A stretch of 32,000 nt of DNA from Amoeboradix gromovi X-113. Its lineage: Eukaryota; Fungi; Sanchytriomycota. This document shows positions 3,087-27,543 of this stretch, in pieces (within the stretch, counting starts at the first letter, position 1; every line of letters begins with the position of its first letter). The notes under the pieces are model-generated. The model was given only the letters and a program-made list of their open reading frames with translations. It had not been told where the DNA came from and searched no databases. A program made the position numbers and the translations under genes. Location of the stretch: NCBI GenBank assembly GCA_018985225.1, contig JADGIF010000003.1, forward strand, positions 23,020-55,019. Reading direction: 5' to 3'.

Positions 3087-4702
3087 ATGGATGTAATCCT
3101 GAACATGTCAAAACCTGGTTGGTTGGAAAAATGTAAAATTTTGTCATGTTGTACTCTCAAACGTCTACAATTAGTTCCACAAGATCTACTGGCTTTATTT
3201 TCTGATAAATCTCAAGCCCTTACGAAACAGGAACGTGATATATTCATCAAAGGTGTTATCGTAGCTTGCGAAGTAACAAGTTTATCTGCCAATACTACCA
3301 AGAAACGATTCAACTATACAATTTATCCATTTGGAAAAGTATGCAGAGGTGCTCTGACGACCTTGCTAACCATCTCGTGCCAACAATTTCAAAATATCGT
3401 AAACGATTCAAATCAATTCAAGTCTAGACACCATGGCAACAAGGGTAAAGTATTCAACCACGCACTAAATTCTCAAGAAAAAGCTTGTATCAAAGAATGG
3501 CTTTTTGACTTTGCTGAGATTTATGGCGAACAAAGACCTGGAAGAACTTATATGTATAAACAAACCAAGAGGACAAGAGACGTTGCACTTCTCCGGCTAC
3601 CTGCAGACTTTACCATTATCAAATTACATCAGATATACTCGAACTCTGAAAATGCCATTGCTATCGGATATGAGACTTTCAGACGATTATACCAGGAGTG
3701 TGATAATATACGAATAAGATCACCTAGAAGTGACATGTGATACATGCATCGAATTTAAACTGATTTTATCAACTAATGAACTTGCAGAATCAATGTTACT
3801 AAACATTACAACGAAATTTCAAGATCACTTAAGACAAGCTAAGGTTGTTAGGGTAGACTACAATAATTACAGGACAAGGGTTGGAAAAACTACACTTTCT
3901 TTTGGCTTTAGTCAGAATCTGTGTCTCCCTCAATTAAAAGATCAACCTTCAGAGCTTTACTTTCTATCATTATTAAATGTCTCTTTATTTAGGATTTACA
4001 ATGAATCAAGCAAGAGACAAGTGAATTATATTTACAGAGAAGATGTTGGAAAGAAAGGTAACAATAATGTAGCCAGAATGTTGGTAGATTATACCTGTAG
4101 ACTCTCTGAACAAGCGAGAAGGTATCCAGTGTTATTCGCAGATAATTGTGTAGGACAGAATAAGAATAATACTATTGTGAAATTACTTTGTTGGCTATGT
4201 GTGTCTGGTGTATCCGAGTCCATTCAACTCACCTTTATGATCAAATGTCATACTAAATCTAGTCCAGATAGCTGTTTTGGCCATATCAAGAAGAAATTTT
4301 ACAGTCAAGATGTGTATACTGTAGGTCAGATATCAGAGGTAGTAGAATTATCTTCCACTTCTAATAGTAAGTGTATTGAATTTCCTGGAAGGAGATTTAA
4401 AGAATATCGTTCCAAGTTGGATACCTTTTTCAATGATATCTCAGGTATTGCAGGCTATCAATCCTTTTTCATTCAAGTCTAACACTCCTGGGAAAGTCAT
4501 TTTGAAAAAGTTTATCAATGATCCAGATATTTTAGACACTATAATAGATCTTAGGTAAGATTTTCAGTTGAGTGTAGAAGAGTATGCATTTCAACCTGAA
4601 GTGTTAGAACCACCTTTTCTCACAGAGAGAAAGAAGAAAGATTTATCTAAAGTTAAGAAGTACATGCCTGAATATCTGAGAAATACTTTGTTATTTGAAT
4701 GA
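3087..4702 (+). pseudogene. Sola-type (probably Sola2) DDD transposase pseudogene
   Basis: Motifs RSD-CDTC, LSF(G)FSQN, FADNCVGQNKN, (C)HTKSSPDSCFGHIKK and C-terminal PPFLTEKKKKDLSKVKKYMPE. Frameshifts near 3735 and 4470; premature TAA at 4556-4558; expected first catalytic Asp reads Gly. Confidence 0.8.
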
Positions 4703-4769
4703 AATAAAATAGGTTTACTTTAAATTCAATCATATAAAATATTTATCTTTGTAATTTCGATAAAAATTG

Positions 4770-4798
4770 TCTAGTCTAGTTTTTACATAGCATGTCCC
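4770..4798 (+). repeat. right TIR of the transposase element
   Basis: tctagtctagtttttacatagcatgtccc; reverse complement GGGACATGCTATGTAAAAACTAGACTAGA shares GGGACA and TAAAAACTAGACTA with the four-copy repeat TIR. No left TIR found. Confidence 0.7.
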
Positions 4799-4888
4799 AA
4801 GTTGATGTTAATTAATATATATATTATATTTAAAGATTTTATATGAAGGCAGTAATATCTAGAAGATTGCGAAATATGTTTTTCAAAC

Positions 4889-6722
4889 ATGGTAGATAAT
4901 AATCTTAAAGATTCATTTCAAAAACTAGTTGAAAGAGCCTACAAACTTGAAAATATTAATGATGAATTGATAAAAGAAGGTGTCAATATATGTTATGAAA
5001 TGGCAACTAAGTCAGGCTTTAAACTATACAAGTCTGAAAAAGTCGAAGAATATTTGGTTGATTTGGTTTATGAGATGGTTCGTTTAGAGGTTTTGATAGA
5101 ATTTGGCTTTGAAATCTGTACATCTGTTGGTAGAAATAAAATTATCGTGGGTTGTCGAGGTGTTGGTAAAAGTACATTGCTGAAAGTTGGTGCTAAAGTA
5201 ATAGAAGCACTTTGTAAACATATTGCAGTTTACGAGTGGAATTTCGAAGAAAGACCAGCTTTAAATGAGGATGCCAGACCTACAAAACACTTTGGCATCA
5301 CATCACCTGATAGTCAAGAACTAAAAGCGGAAATCATATTGAGAAAAAAAACTGTGTTTTTGTTTATGGACGAGTTTCAAAAACTAGATGTTGATCTGCA
5401 AGACCCTAACGCTAGCGTTTCCAAAATGATTCTAAGTGACATGATGCTTTTTGCAAAGAATCCATTTTCAGTCGTATTTGTTGCCAGCAGTGTCAATTCA
5501 ATTACTCGGATCGTATTTCGACATACAGGTCCTGTAAAATCACTTCTACCAAACATGAATGATCAGGTGTTTACTGTGTTACGTGTCCCGGAACTAAGAA
5601 ATGAAAACGAGATTAAGGAATTTATTGGTGGAAGAAAGCCAAATATTGACATGAATGAGTTGTTTTACTATAAAGGAGGCATCGGTCGTGAAATGTTGGA
5701 TTTCCATAAGCCTTAAACATAATGAAACAAAAATCATTATTTTTAAGGAAAAATTAAATTCATCATTATTCTTCCCAAAAATTGTATATTGTTTATGTTC
5801 AAAGCAGCTTGAACATATCGGAATTAAATCATTTGATGACTTTGATCGTGGAAAAGCAATTCAGAAAGTTTTTGATAGAACAACTATTCCGAGTTGCTTC
5901 ATACACAATCTTTTTCACAAAAAGGATCATTCTGATCTGGGAGAAGAGTTATTTAGCCTACAAGACTTGGGTTACTTGTCGCTTATTGGTACAGATCAAT
6001 ATGACCTAACTTATCCAATTTGGATTGAGACAGTTGTAGAATGGTTCAAAGAAGTACCAATGAGAAATTTACATCTAGCTACAGAAATTACACTAAATGG
6101 GTTAGGTGATGGTATAGGTTCGCCAGGTGCTTGCATGGAACGCCATATTATTGAAAAGTTTCCATCTTATCTGGAAGGCATCATTGAATTCTATGGGATT
6201 TTGGATTTGGAGAACATAGATATTGACCAAATTACATCAAAATTATTTACATTTTCGCAAGATAAAGGCTTGGACGCTATCTTTTTCATTGAAAACGATG
6301 ACAAAATTCAAATAAACTCTGTACAAGTTAAATGCGGAAAATCATTTATTACACTTGGTAACATGAAGAATCCTGATTCAGATAATGAATCATTTGCATC
6401 TATCTTTCACAAAGCACATAAACAATTAGCTCATTTTATTAAAAACGTAGAAAATCAAGATTGGGGGAGGTTTGTCATTGGACCATTGTATATAATAACG
6501 AGTAGATCATTAGGCCAACAAGTTACTAAAGAATTTTTAAAAAAAGAACATAATTTCATTATTGGTAGGAAAAATAATGTATTTGAATCAACCGATGACT
6601 TCTTTAAAAATACAAAGATGTCTTTCGAGTTGATCTGTGGTTCTGAATTTGCAAAGCTATTTGGTCCTGATATTCTAAAAGCTGCAAATGTTTCAATTGA
6701 TGAAAATACTGAAGCAAAATAA
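4889..6722 (+). CDS. P-loop NTPase + PD-(D/E)xK-like nuclease (Crinkler/RHS-type architecture), split near 5700
   Basis: Walker A GCRGVGKS, Walker B FLFMDE, GGIGRE motif; downstream ORF has GLDAIFF...SVQVKCG (D...QxK). The two ORFs overlap and are joined by a frameshift or a 16-nt GT-AG (5695-5710). Confidence 0.6.
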
Positions 6723-6970: not shown

Positions 6971-7443
6971 GAGACATCAAATATAAAAACCGGACTAACT
7001 TTCTTTAACAACTTGGAACATTATTTAAGAGGCGAGTGGACATTCAGCTAGTTGCGGAGTTGACGAGTATAAAAGGAGAATAAATATTCTGTACAGCTAT
7101 TCTCTTACTCTTTTATCCAATCTTTATTTCAAATAAACCTCTGATTAATATCACTGTTACTCTGTAAAAACTAGAATAGATAAGAGTAATGATGTTAGCA
7201 TAACATTACAAAACGACTCTAGAAAAGAGTACCGTCTAGGAAAATGCACCCTTTGCTTAGATGCTCAAAGACCTTTCATGTTTGAACAAGATGCAGGGTC
7301 TTCTAGTTTTATTTTAAAAAGAGGAATACAATTAATGAGAGAATCTTGGTATAATAGAAGATCTTTTATTAATGATAGCATTTCCTCTGTATGGTGCACC
7401 TCCTTTAAAAATGAGTTAGTCTAGTTTTTATATTTGGTGTCCC
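6971..7443 (+). mobile_element. non-autonomous TIR element with Fanzor/TnpB C-terminal remnant, copy 1
   Basis: TIRs GAGACATCAAATATAAAAACCGGACTAACT / AGTTAGTCTAGTTTTTATATTTGGTGTCCC; open frame ...RKEYRLGKCTLCLDAQRPFMFEQDAGSSSFILKRG... Confidence 0.9.
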
Positions 7444-7476
7444 AGATGCTTATTTTTAAAATTTTGATACATTTTG

Positions 7477-7505
7477 TCTAGTCTAGTTTTTACAGAGTGT
7501 GTGCC
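7477..7505 (+). repeat. orphan TIR of a related subfamily
   Basis: tctagtctagtttttacagagtgtgtgcc matches the 4770-4798 terminus. Confidence 0.55.
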
Positions 7506-7509
7506 ATAT

Positions 7510-10697: not shown

Positions 10698-13600
10698 ATG
10701 GGTTTAATTAAAAAGAAGAAAGAAAATGATGATGATATGAAATCGATGGAGAGCGTATCCCCAGATAAAGAAAACAAGCTGAGGAGGATTTTCAAGAAAA
10801 AGGATAATGATGAAGATGATATGAAATCTATAGACAGCATGTCTCCAGAAAAGGAAAGCAAGCTCAAAAGATTGATGAAGAAAAAGAACAGAGAAAGCGG
10901 CGAATTTTTGTCGTCTGCTGTGTCTTTGAACCCTGAAAATAGTGATGAGAAAAAGAAGCATTGGTATTCCATGAGCAGAAAGAGGCGTGAAGATGGGCCT
11001 AGTGTTGAGAGTTTGGGAAAGTCGCATGCAGAAGTAGAAGAGGAACAAATAATTCCAGAAGACCCGCCACCAAAATCCAAAAGTCGTGAGCAAGTGAACG
11101 AGGACAGCTCTCAACGATCAAGAACCAGCAGTGGTAGATCCAGAAGACGGCCATCAACTTCTGAAAAAAAGGAAGACTTTTCTACGGCATTGATGCGAAA
11201 AGATAGTAGTCCATCTGGTAGTCGAAGCAGAATGAGGGAAACAACTAAAGGTAAATCAAATGATAGCATTGAACAACCTGTGCCTGTGCCGCAGCGAACA
11301 ATGTCTCGCAAGAGATCTGCATCTAACAAGTCACTGGAAAGGTCCCGCAGTCATTTAAAACGAAAGGAATCACCTCCACCACCTATACCAACCGGAATTG
11401 TATACAAGAGTAATCCTCGCGTAGCGGAACCATCAACATCAGGACGGGAACTCCCAAAAGAGCAACTAATTGATAGGGAAGGTCCTAAGCGCGATAAAGA
11501 AAAAAATGGGCAACCAGTTGAGCGAATTCCGTCTAATAAATCCCTCGGCCGTCGCACGTCTGAGAAGTCTATAAACAAGCCAAATTTCCAGTTGCCTGCA
11601 GCCCCACCACCTGCTTTGAAAAGGAACAGAAGCCAGCATAGTGAGGACGAGTTTTTTCCAGATGCAGACGCAACTATGAATCTTAACTCTATAACTTCAA
11701 AAACAAAAACTAAGCTAACTAAAGATACAAAGTGGCCCAAGGAAGCTCAAGAACTGTTCGATTATTTTCAGTCTGAATTTCCTTATGTTTTTGAGGAAGA
11801 TTTCTCACCCGTTGTATTGGCTCTCAGTATTATGTTGGAAAAGGGACCCATTCAAGATCTTCAAACTCTAAGTCATTTAATATTGAAAGCTGAAAAGGCA
11901 TTTGAATTACTCGTGAGTGACAGATATGACCAATTTCAATCGTCCTTGGAGACATACACTGCTTTGATTTCTAATGTATCCTTGTCAATGGAAGCTACCA
12001 AAAAGTCATATCTCAAAGGAAACGAAATTAAAGACTTCTTGGTAGAGAGAAACGAAGATTTGCTATCACTGTACAACAAGTCATTAAAACTTCAAAACAC
12101 TCTGAAATCAGTTGAAATCATTCGCAAGATACAACTGGACATAGAATCTGTCGATTCTTTATTGGACAAACACCAATACCTTCAGGTTAGTAAGTTATTA
12201 AAGAAATGCCAACTCAGTTGTGACAACCCCAACTTAGAAGTCATACATAGCATGGCAAGTATTAAAAGAGACCTGTTATTTAAGATAAATGTTGTGTTTG
12301 AACGAATACTCCATGAGTTACAAGACATAATATTTTTAAATCATTCTAAATGTGCTAGCCGATGTTTATTACTGGAGGATGCATTCATCACTAAGGAGGC
12401 CACCAGAAAGGACGCTATCATAGCTGAGCTGGTACTGAAACCCACAGATGGTGCAGTTAACGAGGATTATGAGAATATGTCAGTTTTAGAGTACTTGCAG
12501 GTATTAATACTATCCGTAATAGAACTTGATAGGCAAAATGAACTAATTGATACCATATATAGGAGTGCACAGTCTCAAATGGATGAAATCATGGAGAACG
12601 CTAAGGCAGCAACAATTAGAGAGTTTGCAAATTATAAGTCAACTGCAAAACAGCCAGACACATTAAATATAGACGACTATGCTGTTAAGGTGTTGGACGC
12701 ATATTTTCAATATCTTTACTCCAAGTTAATTGGCATTTTGCACTTGTTGGGATTGGTACAGGATATTTTGAAGAAATTTGTTAAGGTTAAAATATTTGAA
12801 GAATGCTGGGCCATATTCAGAAAAGAGCTTATCAATCTAATGGAATCGTTGCTTCTAGGAAACACTCTCGCAAGTCTAGAATCATTAAAAAACGAGAAAG
12901 CCAAAAGCTTAATGTTCAAGCTTAAGAATGTTGATTTTAAACATTCACTATTTATGAAAACTAGACTGCAGCAGCAGCAGCCATCCCTTTCTTTCGATCC
13001 GTTCTCCATAAAGCTGGATAATAACACTATGCATTTGGCCAATTCCAACATATTTAATATGCTGAGCATATTCCCAAATACCTTGGTGTTTCTCGAGTTA
13101 AGCATGAAATTAACTAGTGTGTTTAAAGATTCAGATTTAATTATGTTTTTGGATGAATGCTTTCAGCAATATTACTTTCCTCAGGTTCAGTCTCAAATAA
13201 ACGACATTGTTGATCAAATTGTGATCGACAGTGATGCATTCCACCTAGAAAGCAATCAGGATTTAAGTCTACGTATAATTAAACGAACTTGTAGATTAAT
13301 TAAAAGTTTGGCTACGCTGATGAGTTTATTACCATTTCATAACAATGAATATTCTCTAATTTTGTTCAACCTTATTAAAAAGATTCACGATAGATGCAAA
13401 TCATATCTAGTTACTGTTTGTGCCCATAAAAGCACTTACAAATTTCTGCAAAATGATTCAATACTTAATTGCCTTGAAAACGAATCTAATTCAATGGAAA
13501 GCAACACCTTATTGATTCAAAATGAGTTCACGTCTAACATCTGTAAAGACATAACCAAAGATGCTCTAATGAATGATTTTACAAGTTTAGCGACTATTGC

Positions 13601-15957: not shown

Positions 15958-16436
15958 GGGACATCAAATATAAAAACTGGACTAACTTTCTATAACAACT
16001 TGGCACATTATTTCAGCTTTATTACTTTATGGATTTAAGAGGCGAGTGGACATTCAGCTAGTTGCGGAGTTGACGAGTATAAAAGGAAAATAAATATTCT
16101 GTACAGCTATTCTCTTACTCTTTCATTCAATCTTTATTTCAAATAAAATATCACTATTACACTTCAAAGAAATAGATAAGAGTAATGATGTTAGTATAAC
16201 ATTACAAAATGACACTAGAAAAGAGTACCGTCTAAGAAAATGCACCTTTTGCTTAGATGCTCAAAGACCTCATATATTTGAACGAGATGCAGGGTCTTCT
16301 AGTTTTATTTTAAAAAGAGGAATACAATCAATGAAAGAAAATTGGTATAATAGAAGATCTTTTATCAATGATAGCATTTCCTGCGTATGGTGCACCTTTA
16401 AAAACGAGTTAGTCTAGTTTTTATATTTGGTGTCTC
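15958..16436 (+). mobile_element. non-autonomous TIR element with Fanzor/TnpB C-terminal remnant, copy 2
   Basis: GGGACATCAAATATAAAAACTGGACTAACT ... AGTTAGTCTAGTTTTTATATTTGGTGTCTC. YYTSKK at ~16155-16172; stop-free frame 16172-16417 IDKSND...RKEYRLRKCTFCLDAQRPHIFERDAGSSSFILKRG...NELV*. Confidence 0.9.
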
Positions 16437-20604: not shown

Positions 20605-20908
20605 GGGACATCAAATATAAAGACTATACTAACTTTCTGATACAGTTTGAATCATTATATCAAGTGTGTGTTAACCGATAGCAAATTACATTAAATTAAT
20701 CAAATTGGTTGCACCTTTTACTTAGACACTCAGAGATCTTATATATATGAAAGAGATAGTGGGTCATCTTGTCTTATTTTAAAGAGAGGAATGGCATTAA
20801 TGAAAGAAAATTGGATTGAAAGAAGGACTCTTATTCATAATAGTATTTCCTCCTTATGGAGTACCTACTTTGAAAACGACTTGGTCTAGTTTTTATATTT
20901 GGTGTCCC
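20605..20908 (+). mobile_element. non-autonomous TIR element with Fanzor/TnpB remnant, copy 3 (diverged subfamily)
   Basis: Same TIRs; frame CTFYLDTQRSYIYERDSGSSCLILKRGMALMKENW...NDLV*. Confidence 0.85.
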
Positions 20909-21744: not shown

Positions 21745-23205
21745 TTGAGTAAACCAATTATCGCAATTACACGAGGGTATCTCCCAAGAAACTCTCTTTC
21801 TAGACCTTTTTAGTTGCATAAAACTGGATATTCGTCCTTTCAACTGCGACAAACGAGACATGCCATATGAAAATGACACAAACTAATGGCCAGGAATTCT
21901 CCGTCTAGTGTCCTCTTAATACTTTTGAATTCCTTCTTTAACAAGATCTGTTAAGTAGCATCCATTTTGGTATTTGGATTACTGTATCATAATTGACATA
22001 AACAATTCCATAAATCTTTATAAATTCTTCTTGTATAGCGCTCTATATTATCATTCTTCCTATAGAATTCATTCAGATTCGTTAGGATAATTCTAGCTTT
22101 ATAGAAAATTAAACTTTCAGGTAAAGTTCTTTTCTTGTGGATGGGATAGATAGAATCAAACTGTTTAAACCAATACTGAAGCTGAATGATTTAAAATTAT
22201 TTTCTGCAGAGCCCAATAGCTGTTGAATATCTTGAAAATCAGCTTCCAATTTCTAATTGATCGAAATTTAAGTCAATGATTCTTGACTACATTTTTTTCG
22301 ATTTGATGTCTATAATTAAAATCCTTAGCATTTCTGTTCTTGAACCAAGAATTGTCGAGTAACCTTAATCCTCTTCTGATGGTTGTGTCTCAAATAAACA
22401 ATTAATAAACAGTAACTGTTGTACTTTCGGATAAGCAATTTTGAATACGGACGAATCTCCTTTGCGATCTTTCATTTCTCTTTCACAGTGGTACAATGAA
22501 TCTTTATTTCTTCAAATATAGATTTCTTAGTTAGAAGACCTAGTACTACCAGGGCTTCTTTTCATTTCTTGGCTCTTGCATGTTTACCAGCAGGATACTT
22601 GTATTGGTTTATAAGAAATAATTATTGAAATATGAAACATTTTGTTTCAACATTGAAGAGGTCAGATCTAGAGAGTTAACAAGCAATGCTAAATGTTGCT
22701 TTTCTACAGGAATTACCCGCGCCTATCCACACCGGCATACAGACTCTTTTAGCATTTCCAAGATATTCTAGAGTCGTTCAGTATCTCAATCTCTTTCACA
22801 ACAGAGATCCTCATATTTACGAGGGTGTTATACAATAAGAAAAATTAGGATATTGGGTGCTAGGTCAGCGTATTGTTTATCAAGTCCTTAAAGCCAGATA
22901 TATGAAAGACATTGGGAGTTGTCAATTAAAGGTAGATACATGCCAGAAGGCAACAAATGGTACATACTTGTAATAGTCGCAATCCTATTTATCCCTGCCC
23001 AGGGTAGTCGAAGCTTGAGCCAGTGATGTAACGGAGTGATAGCTTTTTCATTTTCTTCTGAAAATTCTAAATTTTCTTGTGAATCGGAACTTTAAATAAA
23101 TAGTAAATCATTGAATCTTTTAGAATCACTTTTATTCTTGAAGCGTACTGCGTCTTCATTTTCGCATTAGTTTCCTTCTAAGATCAGAAAACATTAAGTT
23201 TGATT
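21745..23205 (-). pseudogene. decayed LINE ORF2 5' part (APE endonuclease + linker; family B, copy 3)
   Basis: In order on the minus strand: LIKLNV, DAV.LQE.K (23154-23135), YPGQG*IGLR, IFLIV*HP; many stops and frameshifts. Confidence 0.5.
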
Positions 23206-26962: not shown

Positions 26963-27543
26963 GGGACACCAAATATAAAAACTAGACTAACTCGTTTTTA
27001 AAGGTGCACCATACGGAGGAATGCTATAATTAATAAAAGATCTTCTATTATACCAAGACTCTTTCATTACTTTCAATCCCCTCTTCAAAATAAAACTAGA
27101 AGACCCTGCATCTCGTTCAAATATATGAGGTCTTTGAGCATCTAAGCAAAAGGTGCATTTTCTTAGACGGTACTCTTTTCTATTTCATTCTCACAGACAC
27201 TACATTTCTTTGAAGTGTAATCTATGGACAGTCTCCCTGACTCTTGTCTTGCTGAATTTCAGTTTTGTTTTAACTGTTCCAACAACTTAGTACTATGAAT
27301 TAGTACTATGAATCAGAGGTTTATTTAAAATAAAGATTGGATGAAAGAGTAAGAAAATAGCTGTACAGAATATTTATTTCTGAAATTTCGATACAAAAAT
27401 TTATTTATTTTCCTTTTATACTCGTCAACTCCGCACAACTAGCTGAATGTCCACTCGCCTCTTGAATCCATAAAATTAATAAAGCTAAAATAATGTTCAA
27501 AGTTGTTACAGAAAGTTAGTCCAGTTTTTATATTTGATGTCCC
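26963..27543 (-). mobile_element. non-autonomous TIR element with the longest Fanzor/TnpB remnant, copy 4
   Basis: TIRs at both ends; KLLEQLKQ, YTSKKCSVC (27219-27193), CTFC (27157-27146), RD (27115-27110). Confidence 0.92.

Follow-up and report, generated by a model that had tools for sequence, protein, structure and literature searches.

Fanzor1-type nucleases are eukaryotic homologues of TnpB, and the closest known system to the one described here is that of the chytrid Spizellomyces punctatus. Its 24-Mb genome holds 134 'ghost' Spu-1 loci that lack an open reading frame (ORF) and share 30-nucleotide (nt) inverted repeats (PMC10432273). A conserved CA precedes the left inverted repeat in Spu-1 as well as in its ghosts, and functional omegaRNAs are expressed from the right-end inverted-repeat region of the ghost loci (PMC10432273). 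Other Fanzor1 elements, of the Sola2 type, are flanked by 4-bp duplications reading AWWT (PMC3627910). We analyzed a stretch of 32,000 nt from the sanchytrid fungus Amoeboradix gromovi X-113 (contig JADGIF010000003.1, positions 23,020 to 55,019; hereafter 'the window'), which contains four copies of a short repeat bounded by terminal inverted repeats (TIRs). Here we document the anatomy of this repeat, its deletion series, its homology to Fanzor/TnpB in sequence and in fold, its flank motif and its copy number. The repeats are very probably internally deleted, non-autonomous derivatives of a TIR transposon encoding a Fanzor1-type nuclease, that is, 'ghost' elements or miniature inverted-repeat transposable elements (MITEs). 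Fanzor transposons with ORF-less ghost derivatives have already been published for a chytrid (PMC10432273); the A. gromovi case is denser.

Results

Short repeats with common ends carry the remains of a longer gene

All four window copies are located in gene spacers. Repeat search and MAFFT alignment delimited TIRs of 30-31 nt which are 87-93% complementary inside each copy (Table 1), and the window contains 12 occurrences of a 16-nt TIR core where chance would predict 0.09. The first-pass annotation of this DNA had placed four copies with TIRs of about 30 bp here and had proposed that copies 2 and 4 carry complementary deletions which, once joined, restore one frame. Both statements were borne out. 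Copy 2 has lost 22 nt including the first CxxC, copy 4 has lost the 43 nt that lie between the zinc-finger halves, and each deletion is flanked by short direct repeats. The joined frame is real and no splicing artefact, as it runs uninterrupted in other copies (L008:1752-2072, 107 amino acids; L044:1-297; L048; L050). What did not hold was the reading of a 'frameshifted' PLIHSTKLLEQLKQ as part of the C-terminal frame. This stretch consists of a 13-nt tandem repeat and the N-terminal stub of the parent gene, translated in the wrong frame; the correct reading is ...VVGTVKTKLKFSKTRVRET at window positions 27286-27230.

Alignment of the longest copies yields a composite layout. The 5' TIR is followed by approximately 200 nt of subterminal sequence and by 2 to 8 units of the 13-nt tandem repeat. 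In longer copies these parts are followed by an upstream region and by an ATG that starts a basic stub (MAKRKQKLSYTSKSKKKKPDTD...KLKFSKTRVRET). After a breakpoint come the last ~100 codons (D-Y-TS-KK-CxxC ... CxxC ... ERD-A-G-S-S-S-F-I ...), and the stop codon of this ORF remnant falls within the 3' TIR in the fuller copies. Start stub and C-terminal tail lie in different frames, and the MITEs therefore make neither a nuclease nor a fusion protein. RuvC-I and RuvC-II are deleted, and of the TnpB motif only the part from TS onward is kept. In copy 4 the part that carries the second CxxC and RuvC-III is 65% identical to residues 371-425 of the ORF of L088 (described below) and 67% identical to residues 569-601 of P0007, a 616-amino-acid full-length metagenomic relative. 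In this copy the tandem repeat (unit like CTAATTCATAGTA) occupies window positions 27286-27319 on the minus strand, in the 5' half of the element; the number of units ranges from ~2 to 8 among copies.

The copies form a nested size series with common ends (304, ~480, 581, 660-726 and 1660 bp). The 3' ~250 nt are retained in all copies seen, the 304-bp copy included. Among 43 copies, the last 30 nt deviate from the consensus by 1.8% vs 5.2% for the ORF remnant, and 10 of the 43 carry deletions in that remnant.

Longer relatives with the same TIR

We found two longer elements that carry the MITE TIR with 2 mismatches. L085 (contig C33) spans 1.66 kb, has both ends and contains three consecutive ORF pieces corresponding to P0007 residues 30-104, 270-332 and 335-583. 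The first piece opens with KFSKTRVRET, the same as the MITE stub, and continues into N-terminal helices that align with P0007 30-104. L088 (contig C1157) has a 436-codon open frame, 63% identical, whose N-terminus is cut by the contig start and which stops 24 bp short of the TIR. A search for a full-length ORF starting from the N-terminal stub returned a longest open frame of 143 amino acids. Thus, the suggestion that a full-length ORF would be found between the same TIRs held as far as longer ORFs are concerned, but not for a complete intact copy in this assembly.

The family is abundant in a compact genome

The sanchytrid genome of A. gromovi comprises 10.5 Mb at 36% GC content and was assembled from single-cell short reads (PMC8371127). 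A protein search of the genome with the 81-codon remnant gave 1022 first-look candidates, with all 150 scored candidates at an expectation value (E) <=6.5e-34, and a DNA search for the MITE family gave 1422 candidates. Because of these candidate numbers and of the four copies in 32 kb, we estimate ~1000 copies, approximately one per 8 kb or ~5% of the genome. Several copies are broken off at contig ends, as expected since they are repeats in a short-read assembly. The literature searched contains no mention of Fanzor in Sanchytriomycota.

Flanking sequences point to a C/AWWT/G target

The sequences bordering 43 left ends and 56 right ends follow the pattern C-A-W-W-T, element, A-W-W-T-G. On the left side, C was found at -5 in 39 of 43 and A at -4 in 42 of 43 cases, and on the right side A at +1 in 55 of 56 and T at +4 in 44 of 56. 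Copy 4 reads C-A-T-A-A on the left and A-A-A-T-C on the right. Perfect 4-bp direct duplications flank 10 of 36 complete copies, vs 3.25 expected with shuffled partners, and none of 2000 shuffles reached 10. At the central dinucleotide, direct matches were enriched (11 vs 5.2 expected, p 0.006), and reverse-complement matches were not. Flank pattern and duplications therefore indicate a C/AWWT/G target with a 4-bp duplication. This is the AT-rich (AWWT) 4-bp duplication of Sola2 elements. The common repeats of ~30 nt, the CA upstream of the left end and the lack of a nuclease ORF are likewise the traits of ghost Fanzor elements.

Sequence relationships of the encoded protein

An HMMER search of the MITE ORF against 1.8 billion proteins identified P0003 (80% identity) and P0007 (E 7.9e-4). 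P0003 is a 256-amino-acid protein of the sanchytrid gene set (EukProt, Amoeboradix gromovi) and is 100% identical to contig C33. P0007 is 38% identical to the L088 ORF over 354 amino acids (E 6e-64) and matches intact genes on contigs C363 and C1184 (E 2e-18 and 4e-16). These two genes, L093:1460-3517 (minus strand) and L094:288-2492 (plus strand), encode 685 and 734 amino acids, are 70% identical to each other, have their motifs collinear with P0007 over the whole length and pass the gathering cut-off (26.3 bits) of PF07282 (TnpB/Cas12f zinc ribbon; Cas12f1-like TNB / OrfB) with 33.2 and 36.0 bits. The closest MITE relatives with an intact '(V/I)(D/N)E-x-x-TSK-x-C' lead-in reached 26.1 and 24.6 bits (E 1e-5 to 3e-5), under the cut-off. 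At E<=1, PF07282 matches were obtained for 9 of 10 members of the family. When the RuvC/zinc-ribbon half was turned into a profile and compared with PDB sequences, it gave weak matches of which 8 of 10 were Cas12m, Cas12f/TnpB and SpuFz, and aligned the ERD of the family to the canonical DRD-x-N-A-A-x-N-I. BLASTP of the MITE ORF against the canonical TnpB L076 of the same genome returned nothing meaningful, and phmmer of the intact L094 against PDB returned chance-level matches only. Word-indexed searches found 2-3 related proteins each, and scans of viral and metagenome contigs found no further family members; the family is rare in public data.

The TnpB/Fanzor motif defined by Bao & Jurka reads D-X(125,275)-[TS][TS]-X-X-C4-X(5,50)-RD (PMC3627910). 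P0007 fits it with D346, 201 residues, T548/S549, C552/C555/C574/C577, 10 residues and R588/D589, and the L088 ORF and L085 show this arrangement too, except for the truncated end of the latter. At the level of sequence, D346, E545 and D589 (P0007 numbering) are conserved in the family. The D of the 'DPG' motif is found in all 8 sequences covering it, E545 in at least 90% of sequences and RD in most, P0001 having RG and P0013 KD. In Fanzors RuvC-II is rearranged: G or P stands in place of the canonical glutamate, and an alternative conserved glutamate follows ~45 residues on (PMC10530073). The family has W-G-(D/N)-G (P0007 508-511) and, ~35 residues later and directly before TS, the conserved E545, which may correspond to this arrangement. 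A protein encoded in a eukaryotic genome also fits Fanzor rather than canonical TnpB.

Predicted fold and identity of the nuclease

An AlphaFold (AF2) model of P0007 residues 325-616 (predicted local distance difference test (pLDDT) 62, predicted template modelling score (pTM) 0.53) appears to show the RNase H-like RuvC fold, into which a zinc ribbon is inserted, at moderate model quality. Foldseek hits 1-4 and 6 in PDB were SpuFz and GtFz (E 3.8e-5 to 1.3e-4, probability 1.0; template modelling score (TM) 0.38-0.44). The remaining hits were Cas12f, ApmFz2 and TnpB, so that Fanzor/TnpB/Cas12 proteins made up 50 of the 50 top hits. In BFVD the top matches were TNB-domain 'transposases' of nudivirus, granulovirus and giant viruses. 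In the ESM Atlas, P0007 and the L088 ORF neighbour giant-virus clusters described as 'DUF8286 + Cas12f1-like TNB' (0.97-0.98), with TM 0.70 over ~500 residues, and bacterial TnpB clusters reached TM 0.56-0.64 by hit length. The mode of carriage is of the Fanzor1 type: the TIRs measure 30 nt, the duplication 4 bp, no serine recombinase lies within the 1.66-kb L085, and the best structural matches of the predicted model are Fanzor1 proteins.

These data bear on several further proposals of the first-pass annotation. The suggestion that the genome has, or once had, a family of predicted RNA-guided nucleases holds, given the intact genes. Structure prediction and inspection of the RuvC triad came out in favour of the idea, with the Fanzor1 structures SpuFz and GtFz as best PDB matches and the three catalytic positions conserved by sequence. 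The RDAGSSSFI motif does depart from the usual RDxNAAxNI, and since ERD-x-G-S-x-x-x-I is common to members only 37-40% identical, it is a clade trait and not decay. The anticipated match to TnpB/Fanzor profiles was obtained above the cut-off for the intact genes; the nearest relatives of the MITEs fell just under it, and the bare MITE peptide gave no match.

A candidate mobiliser and a second short family

Being relics without a nuclease and unable to move themselves, the MITEs would have depended on a transposase acting in trans from another locus. As its element ends in a related TIR, the DUF7869 protein is the best candidate. The window holds a transposase-like gene (DUF7869/PF25273, 62.7 bits) split over two frames of 217 and 250 codons, which has at least 47 genomic copies, some with open frames of 579-687 amino acids. 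Its terminal repeat has 22 of the 28 outer bases (4772-4799) in common with the MITE 3' TIR. The 3' region is contiguous with this terminus in contig C418 too, and a 5' TIR of the DUF7869 element was not found in the window.

Right ends of a second abundant short family lie at window positions 4738-4799 and 7450-7506. This family has at least 90 first-look matches, many at contig ends, and its TIR reads TAGTCTAGTTTTTACA...GTCCCA. The end at 4738-4799 is the terminus of the DUF7869 element, and the one at 7450-7506 begins 6 bp after MITE copy 1, with no partner end nearby. On contig C558 (3769-5620), a MITE 5' half (5365-5620) and a DUF7869 match (3769-4500) occur on one strand, ~0.9 kb apart, an arrangement that could represent an autonomous element with the left end of the MITE.

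Other Fanzor and TnpB genes, and neighbouring genes

The window additionally contains a decayed Fanzor relic related to P0007 (Table 1), at which no recognisable TIR was found. Internally deleted copies of its subfamily are also present on contigs C574 and C1001 (L096, L097). L093 and L094 have a canonical DRDVN(A/S) RuvC-III and are possible active nucleases. No TIRs were found around P0007, L093 or L094. P0007 itself is encoded on the ENA metagenome contig L082, where the adjacent genes (AAA_25, dCMP deaminase, U-box) are small and lack introns; this contig may derive from a giant virus or a protist.

The genome also has a canonical TnpB family distinct from this one, with PF07282 scores of up to 74 bits. 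It gave 560 first-look candidates and occurs in at least 150 places besides L076 (contig C542), e.g. L067-L075. Its members are mostly C-terminal relics of 100-150 codons, and one copy of 569 amino acids adjoins a fragment of an IS607-type serine recombinase, which is a Fanzor2-like arrangement.

The genes of the window are eukaryotic and compact and include kinesin, Sec8, cactin and a primase subunit. Within the 1248-codon Sec8-like ORF, positions 10710-10877 form an 84-nt tandem duplication of 70% identity.

Table 1. Position of the MITE copies, their parts and related features in the window
Feature	Position	Strand	Remarks
MITE copy 4	26963-27543	-	581 bp; very probably an internally deleted Fanzor transposon; TIR pair 93% complementary
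MITE copy 4, 5' (left-end) TIR	27514-27543	-	TIR pairing
MITE copy 4, N-terminal remnant of the parent gene	27230-27286	-	19 codons, VVGTVKTKLKFSKTRVRET; frame differs from that of the C-terminal remnant
MITE copy 4, TS-K motif and first CxxC of the TnpB-type zinc ribbon (TNB)	27181-27222	-	DYTSKKCSVCENEI; tblastn with the L088 ORF and L085
MITE copy 4, second CxxC, RuvC-III 'ERD-A-G-S-S-S-F-I' and C-terminal tail	27020-27178	-	out of frame with 27181-27222 through the 43-nt deletion
MITE copy 4, 3' (right-end) TIR	26963-26992	-	TIR pairing
MITE copy 1	6971-7443	+	473 bp; ORF remnant 7176-7421 (C766:30195-30440) open
MITE copy 2	15958-16436	+	479 bp; ORF remnant 16172-16417 open (81 codons), first CxxC lost
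MITE copy 3	20605-20908	+	304 bp, divergent short subfamily; 5' TIR and ~25 nt, 3' ~250 nt; ORF remnant 20710-20862
Decayed P0007-like Fanzor relic (N-terminal region and C-terminal tip)	21868-22190 (C766:44988-45446)	-	P0007 136-199, 42% identity, E 8e-11
DUF7869 transposase-like gene and terminal repeat	3087-4799	+	candidate mobiliser; frames 3087-3740 and 3730-4482, repeat 4769-4799

Discussion

How did an abundant short repeat come to hold pieces of a nuclease gene? Descent by internal deletion from a Fanzor1-type transposon has to be weighed against readings that give the relics a function or another origin. The MITEs might be working ghost omegaRNA loci, in which the 3' end of each copy would supply the scaffold, and its flank the guide, for Fanzor made from the few intact genes. 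We regard this as unlikely, if worth entertaining; it is compatible with internal deletion because it only adds a function to the relics. The constant 3' ~250 nt and the intact Fanzor genes of the genome fit the idea, as do the terminal 30-40 nt, which are near-invariant across subfamilies, the functional omegaRNAs that S. punctatus ghost loci express from their right end (PMC10432273), and the folding of the 3' 200 nt, slightly stronger than that of shuffled sequences (z -1.67), which is not the case for the 5' 200 nt (z +0.5). Yet the terminal conservation is equally explained by transposase binding, and the apparent retention is biased, most copies having been retrieved through their 3' end. 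Moreover, L088 has one arm of the terminal hairpin replaced, and the intact L093 and L094 are of a different subfamily, aligning with P0007 at 23% identity, and lack such TIRs. The lack of covariation among 8 diverged 3' ends (term +0.64, compensatory changes in 2 of 28 pairs) and the lack of an Rfam match speak both against this possibility and against the omegaRNA part of our own proposal. A bolder version would see in the ~1000 relics a genome-wide ghost omegaRNA library that loads the few intact Fanzors, each relic being transcribed from its invariant right end into another flank, with RNA-guided cutting at empty C-AWWT-G sites (homing) explaining the success of the family beyond what a transposase alone would achieve; we consider it a long shot. 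Descent might also have run in the reverse direction, with an older MITE family capturing a Fanzor fragment and the longer elements being secondary chimeras. The MITE 5' subterminal motifs resemble the subterminal sequence of the second, transposase-linked family, and the ends may therefore predate the Fanzor cargo; Fanzor1 genes are known to have been captured by varied transposons (PMC3627910). However, the MITEs hold the first ~45 codons with the upstream region as well as the last ~100 codons, collinear with the 1.66-kb element and P0007. Start and end of one gene retained collinearly are what internal deletion predicts and fragment capture does not. The breakpoints at short direct repeats and the overlap of ORF tail and TIR, counted here for the MITEs and for the L088 ORF (although the latter ends before the TIR), also oppose capture, which leaves this reading very doubtful.

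Selection could in principle have kept the ~100-codon remnant open as a functional gene for a small zinc-finger protein. In approximately 70% of the 150 copies scored, the 81-codon remnant is free of stop codons, and the substitutions away from the consensus comprise 147 synonymous, 249 non-synonymous and 9 stop changes vs 138, 550 and 41 possible ones. We set this synonymous excess aside because the copies were chosen by protein similarity, a bias that favours open and conserved frames. Furthermore, differences between subfamilies that go back to coding parents make up much of the variation, and copies only ~5% off the consensus would often be open by chance. There is no conserved in-frame start or promoter, and besides the deletions in 10 of 43 remnants, window copies 2 and 4 are disrupted in different ways; a gene of this kind is highly improbable. 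A remnant of an unrelated zinc-finger protein whose likeness to TnpB arose by chance would account for the bare MITE peptide having no Pfam match and for RD-x-G-S-S departing from the usual RD-x-N-A-A-x-N-I. The full-length relatives, however, carry the whole layout D...E-x-x-TS-x-x-C4...RD together with sequence, embedding and fold matches to the TnpB family, and these rule against such an origin, to which we give practically no credence. Internal deletion of a Fanzor1-type transposon has points against it, too. Next to the missing Pfam match of the bare peptide, the full-length family profile found no match among PDB sequences, and an hhalign comparison with the canonical TnpB family of the genome was weak (E 0.0047, probability 7%). 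The full-length P0007 AlphaFold model, built on a 10-row alignment, was unusable (pLDDT 36), and the fold evidence comes from a medium-quality model (pLDDT 62, TM 0.41-0.44). The short-read assembly has no complete intact copy of this exact subfamily, with L088 cut by a contig end and L085 frameshifted and deleted. Perfect duplications flank only ~28% of copies and 0 of the 4 in the window, and TIR similarity is the only link to the transposase.

On balance, we favour descent by internal deletion. The parent would have been a single-gene TIR transposon of ~2.3-2.5 kb encoding a Fanzor1-type nuclease of ~600 amino acids. Deletions between short direct repeats probably removed ~450 codons comprising the helical/REC region, RuvC-I and RuvC-II. 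Left behind are the two 30-nt TIRs, ~200 nt of 5' subterminal sequence with the variable 13-nt tandem repeat, a promoter-proximal ATG stub in the longer copies, and the last ~100 codons with zinc ribbon, RuvC-III and a tail running into the 3' TIR. Amplification to ~1000 copies probably took place by insertion in gene spacers at C/AWWT/G with 4-bp duplication, with a transposase from outside the element presumably acting in trans. The 3' end, which every copy seen retains, may also serve as an omegaRNA gene, like that of the Spizellomyces ghost loci.

The finding leaves the current picture of what Fanzors are unchanged. It extends Fanzor transposons and their ORF-less derivatives to the newly described fungal phylum Sanchytriomycota, where stepwise internal deletion of the nuclease gene is very probably a visible route to ghost elements. 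The relics of one nuclease transposon occupy an estimated 5% of a very compact genome and many of its gene spacers, which bears on annotation and on the evolution of spacers. The genome also holds a divergent clade (RuvC-III ERD-x-G-S), the intact genes of 685 and 734 amino acids and an IS607-type family, all of them candidates for compact nucleases in genome editing. If the genome-wide omegaRNA library were real, no eukaryote would be known to have a denser natural system of RNA-guided nucleases than A. gromovi.

Bacterial TnpB elements (IS200/IS605, IS607) share with the A. gromovi family the RuvC and zinc-ribbon core, the TS-x-x-C4...RD signature and non-autonomous derivatives that keep the right end. 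Unlike it, they lack TIRs and target duplications and are moved by HUH (IS200/IS605 TnpA) or serine (IS607 TnpA) recombinases. The A. gromovi proteins are ~200 amino acids longer, with a basic N-terminus and a Fanzor-type glutamate beside the TS motif. Other related systems are the Sola2-type elements DFa-1, DFa-2 and DFa-3 of Dictyostelium fasciculatum and the Fanzor1 families of baculoviruses and ascoviruses (PMC3627910). They are TIR elements with a Fanzor1 gene and AT-rich 4-bp duplications (AWWT in DFa), and DFa-1 and DFa-3 are non-autonomous, having lost most of the transposase (PMC3627910). A granulovirus TNB protein is the second-best fold match in BFVD. In contrast, the TIRs measure 12-13 bp there vs 30 bp here, and those families have few to tens of multi-kilobase copies. 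By language-model features and by predicted structure, with no alignment or E-value behind the comparison, the nearest neighbours of P0007 and the L088 ORF are the DUF8286 + Cas12f1-like TNB proteins of giant viruses (automatically built clusters, mostly Nucleocytoviricota). They are similar in length (600-670 amino acids), but appear there as viral 'transposase' genes and here as cargo and relics of a chromosomal fungal transposon.

The closest known system is Spu-1 with the ghost Spu-1 loci of S. punctatus (Saito et al. 2023, PMC10432273). Both are small elements of a zoosporic fungal host whose sole gene encodes, or in A. gromovi probably encoded, a Fanzor1-type nuclease, with 30-nt inverted repeats, C-A before the left end, no internal transposase and many short derivatives (~550 nt in S. 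punctatus) that keep the same ends without the nuclease, and SpuFz is the best structural match to our RuvC/TNB model. The differences are as instructive. The A. gromovi family has ~1000 copies in 10.5 Mb vs 134 ghost loci in 24 Mb, and its ORF runs into the 3' TIR, whereas that of Spu-1 stops ~80 nt before it. It represents a divergent clade: structural alignment with SpuFz gives 12-16% identity, no PDB hit by sequence falls below E 9.7, and RuvC-III reads ERD-x-G-S-x-x-x-I. An omegaRNA has been demonstrated in S. punctatus, whereas for the elements described here it is hypothetical. Finally, unlike the ghost Spu-1 loci, the A. gromovi derivatives keep the start stub and the last ~100 codons of the gene, and because these coding pieces are retained, their origin by internal deletion can be read directly.

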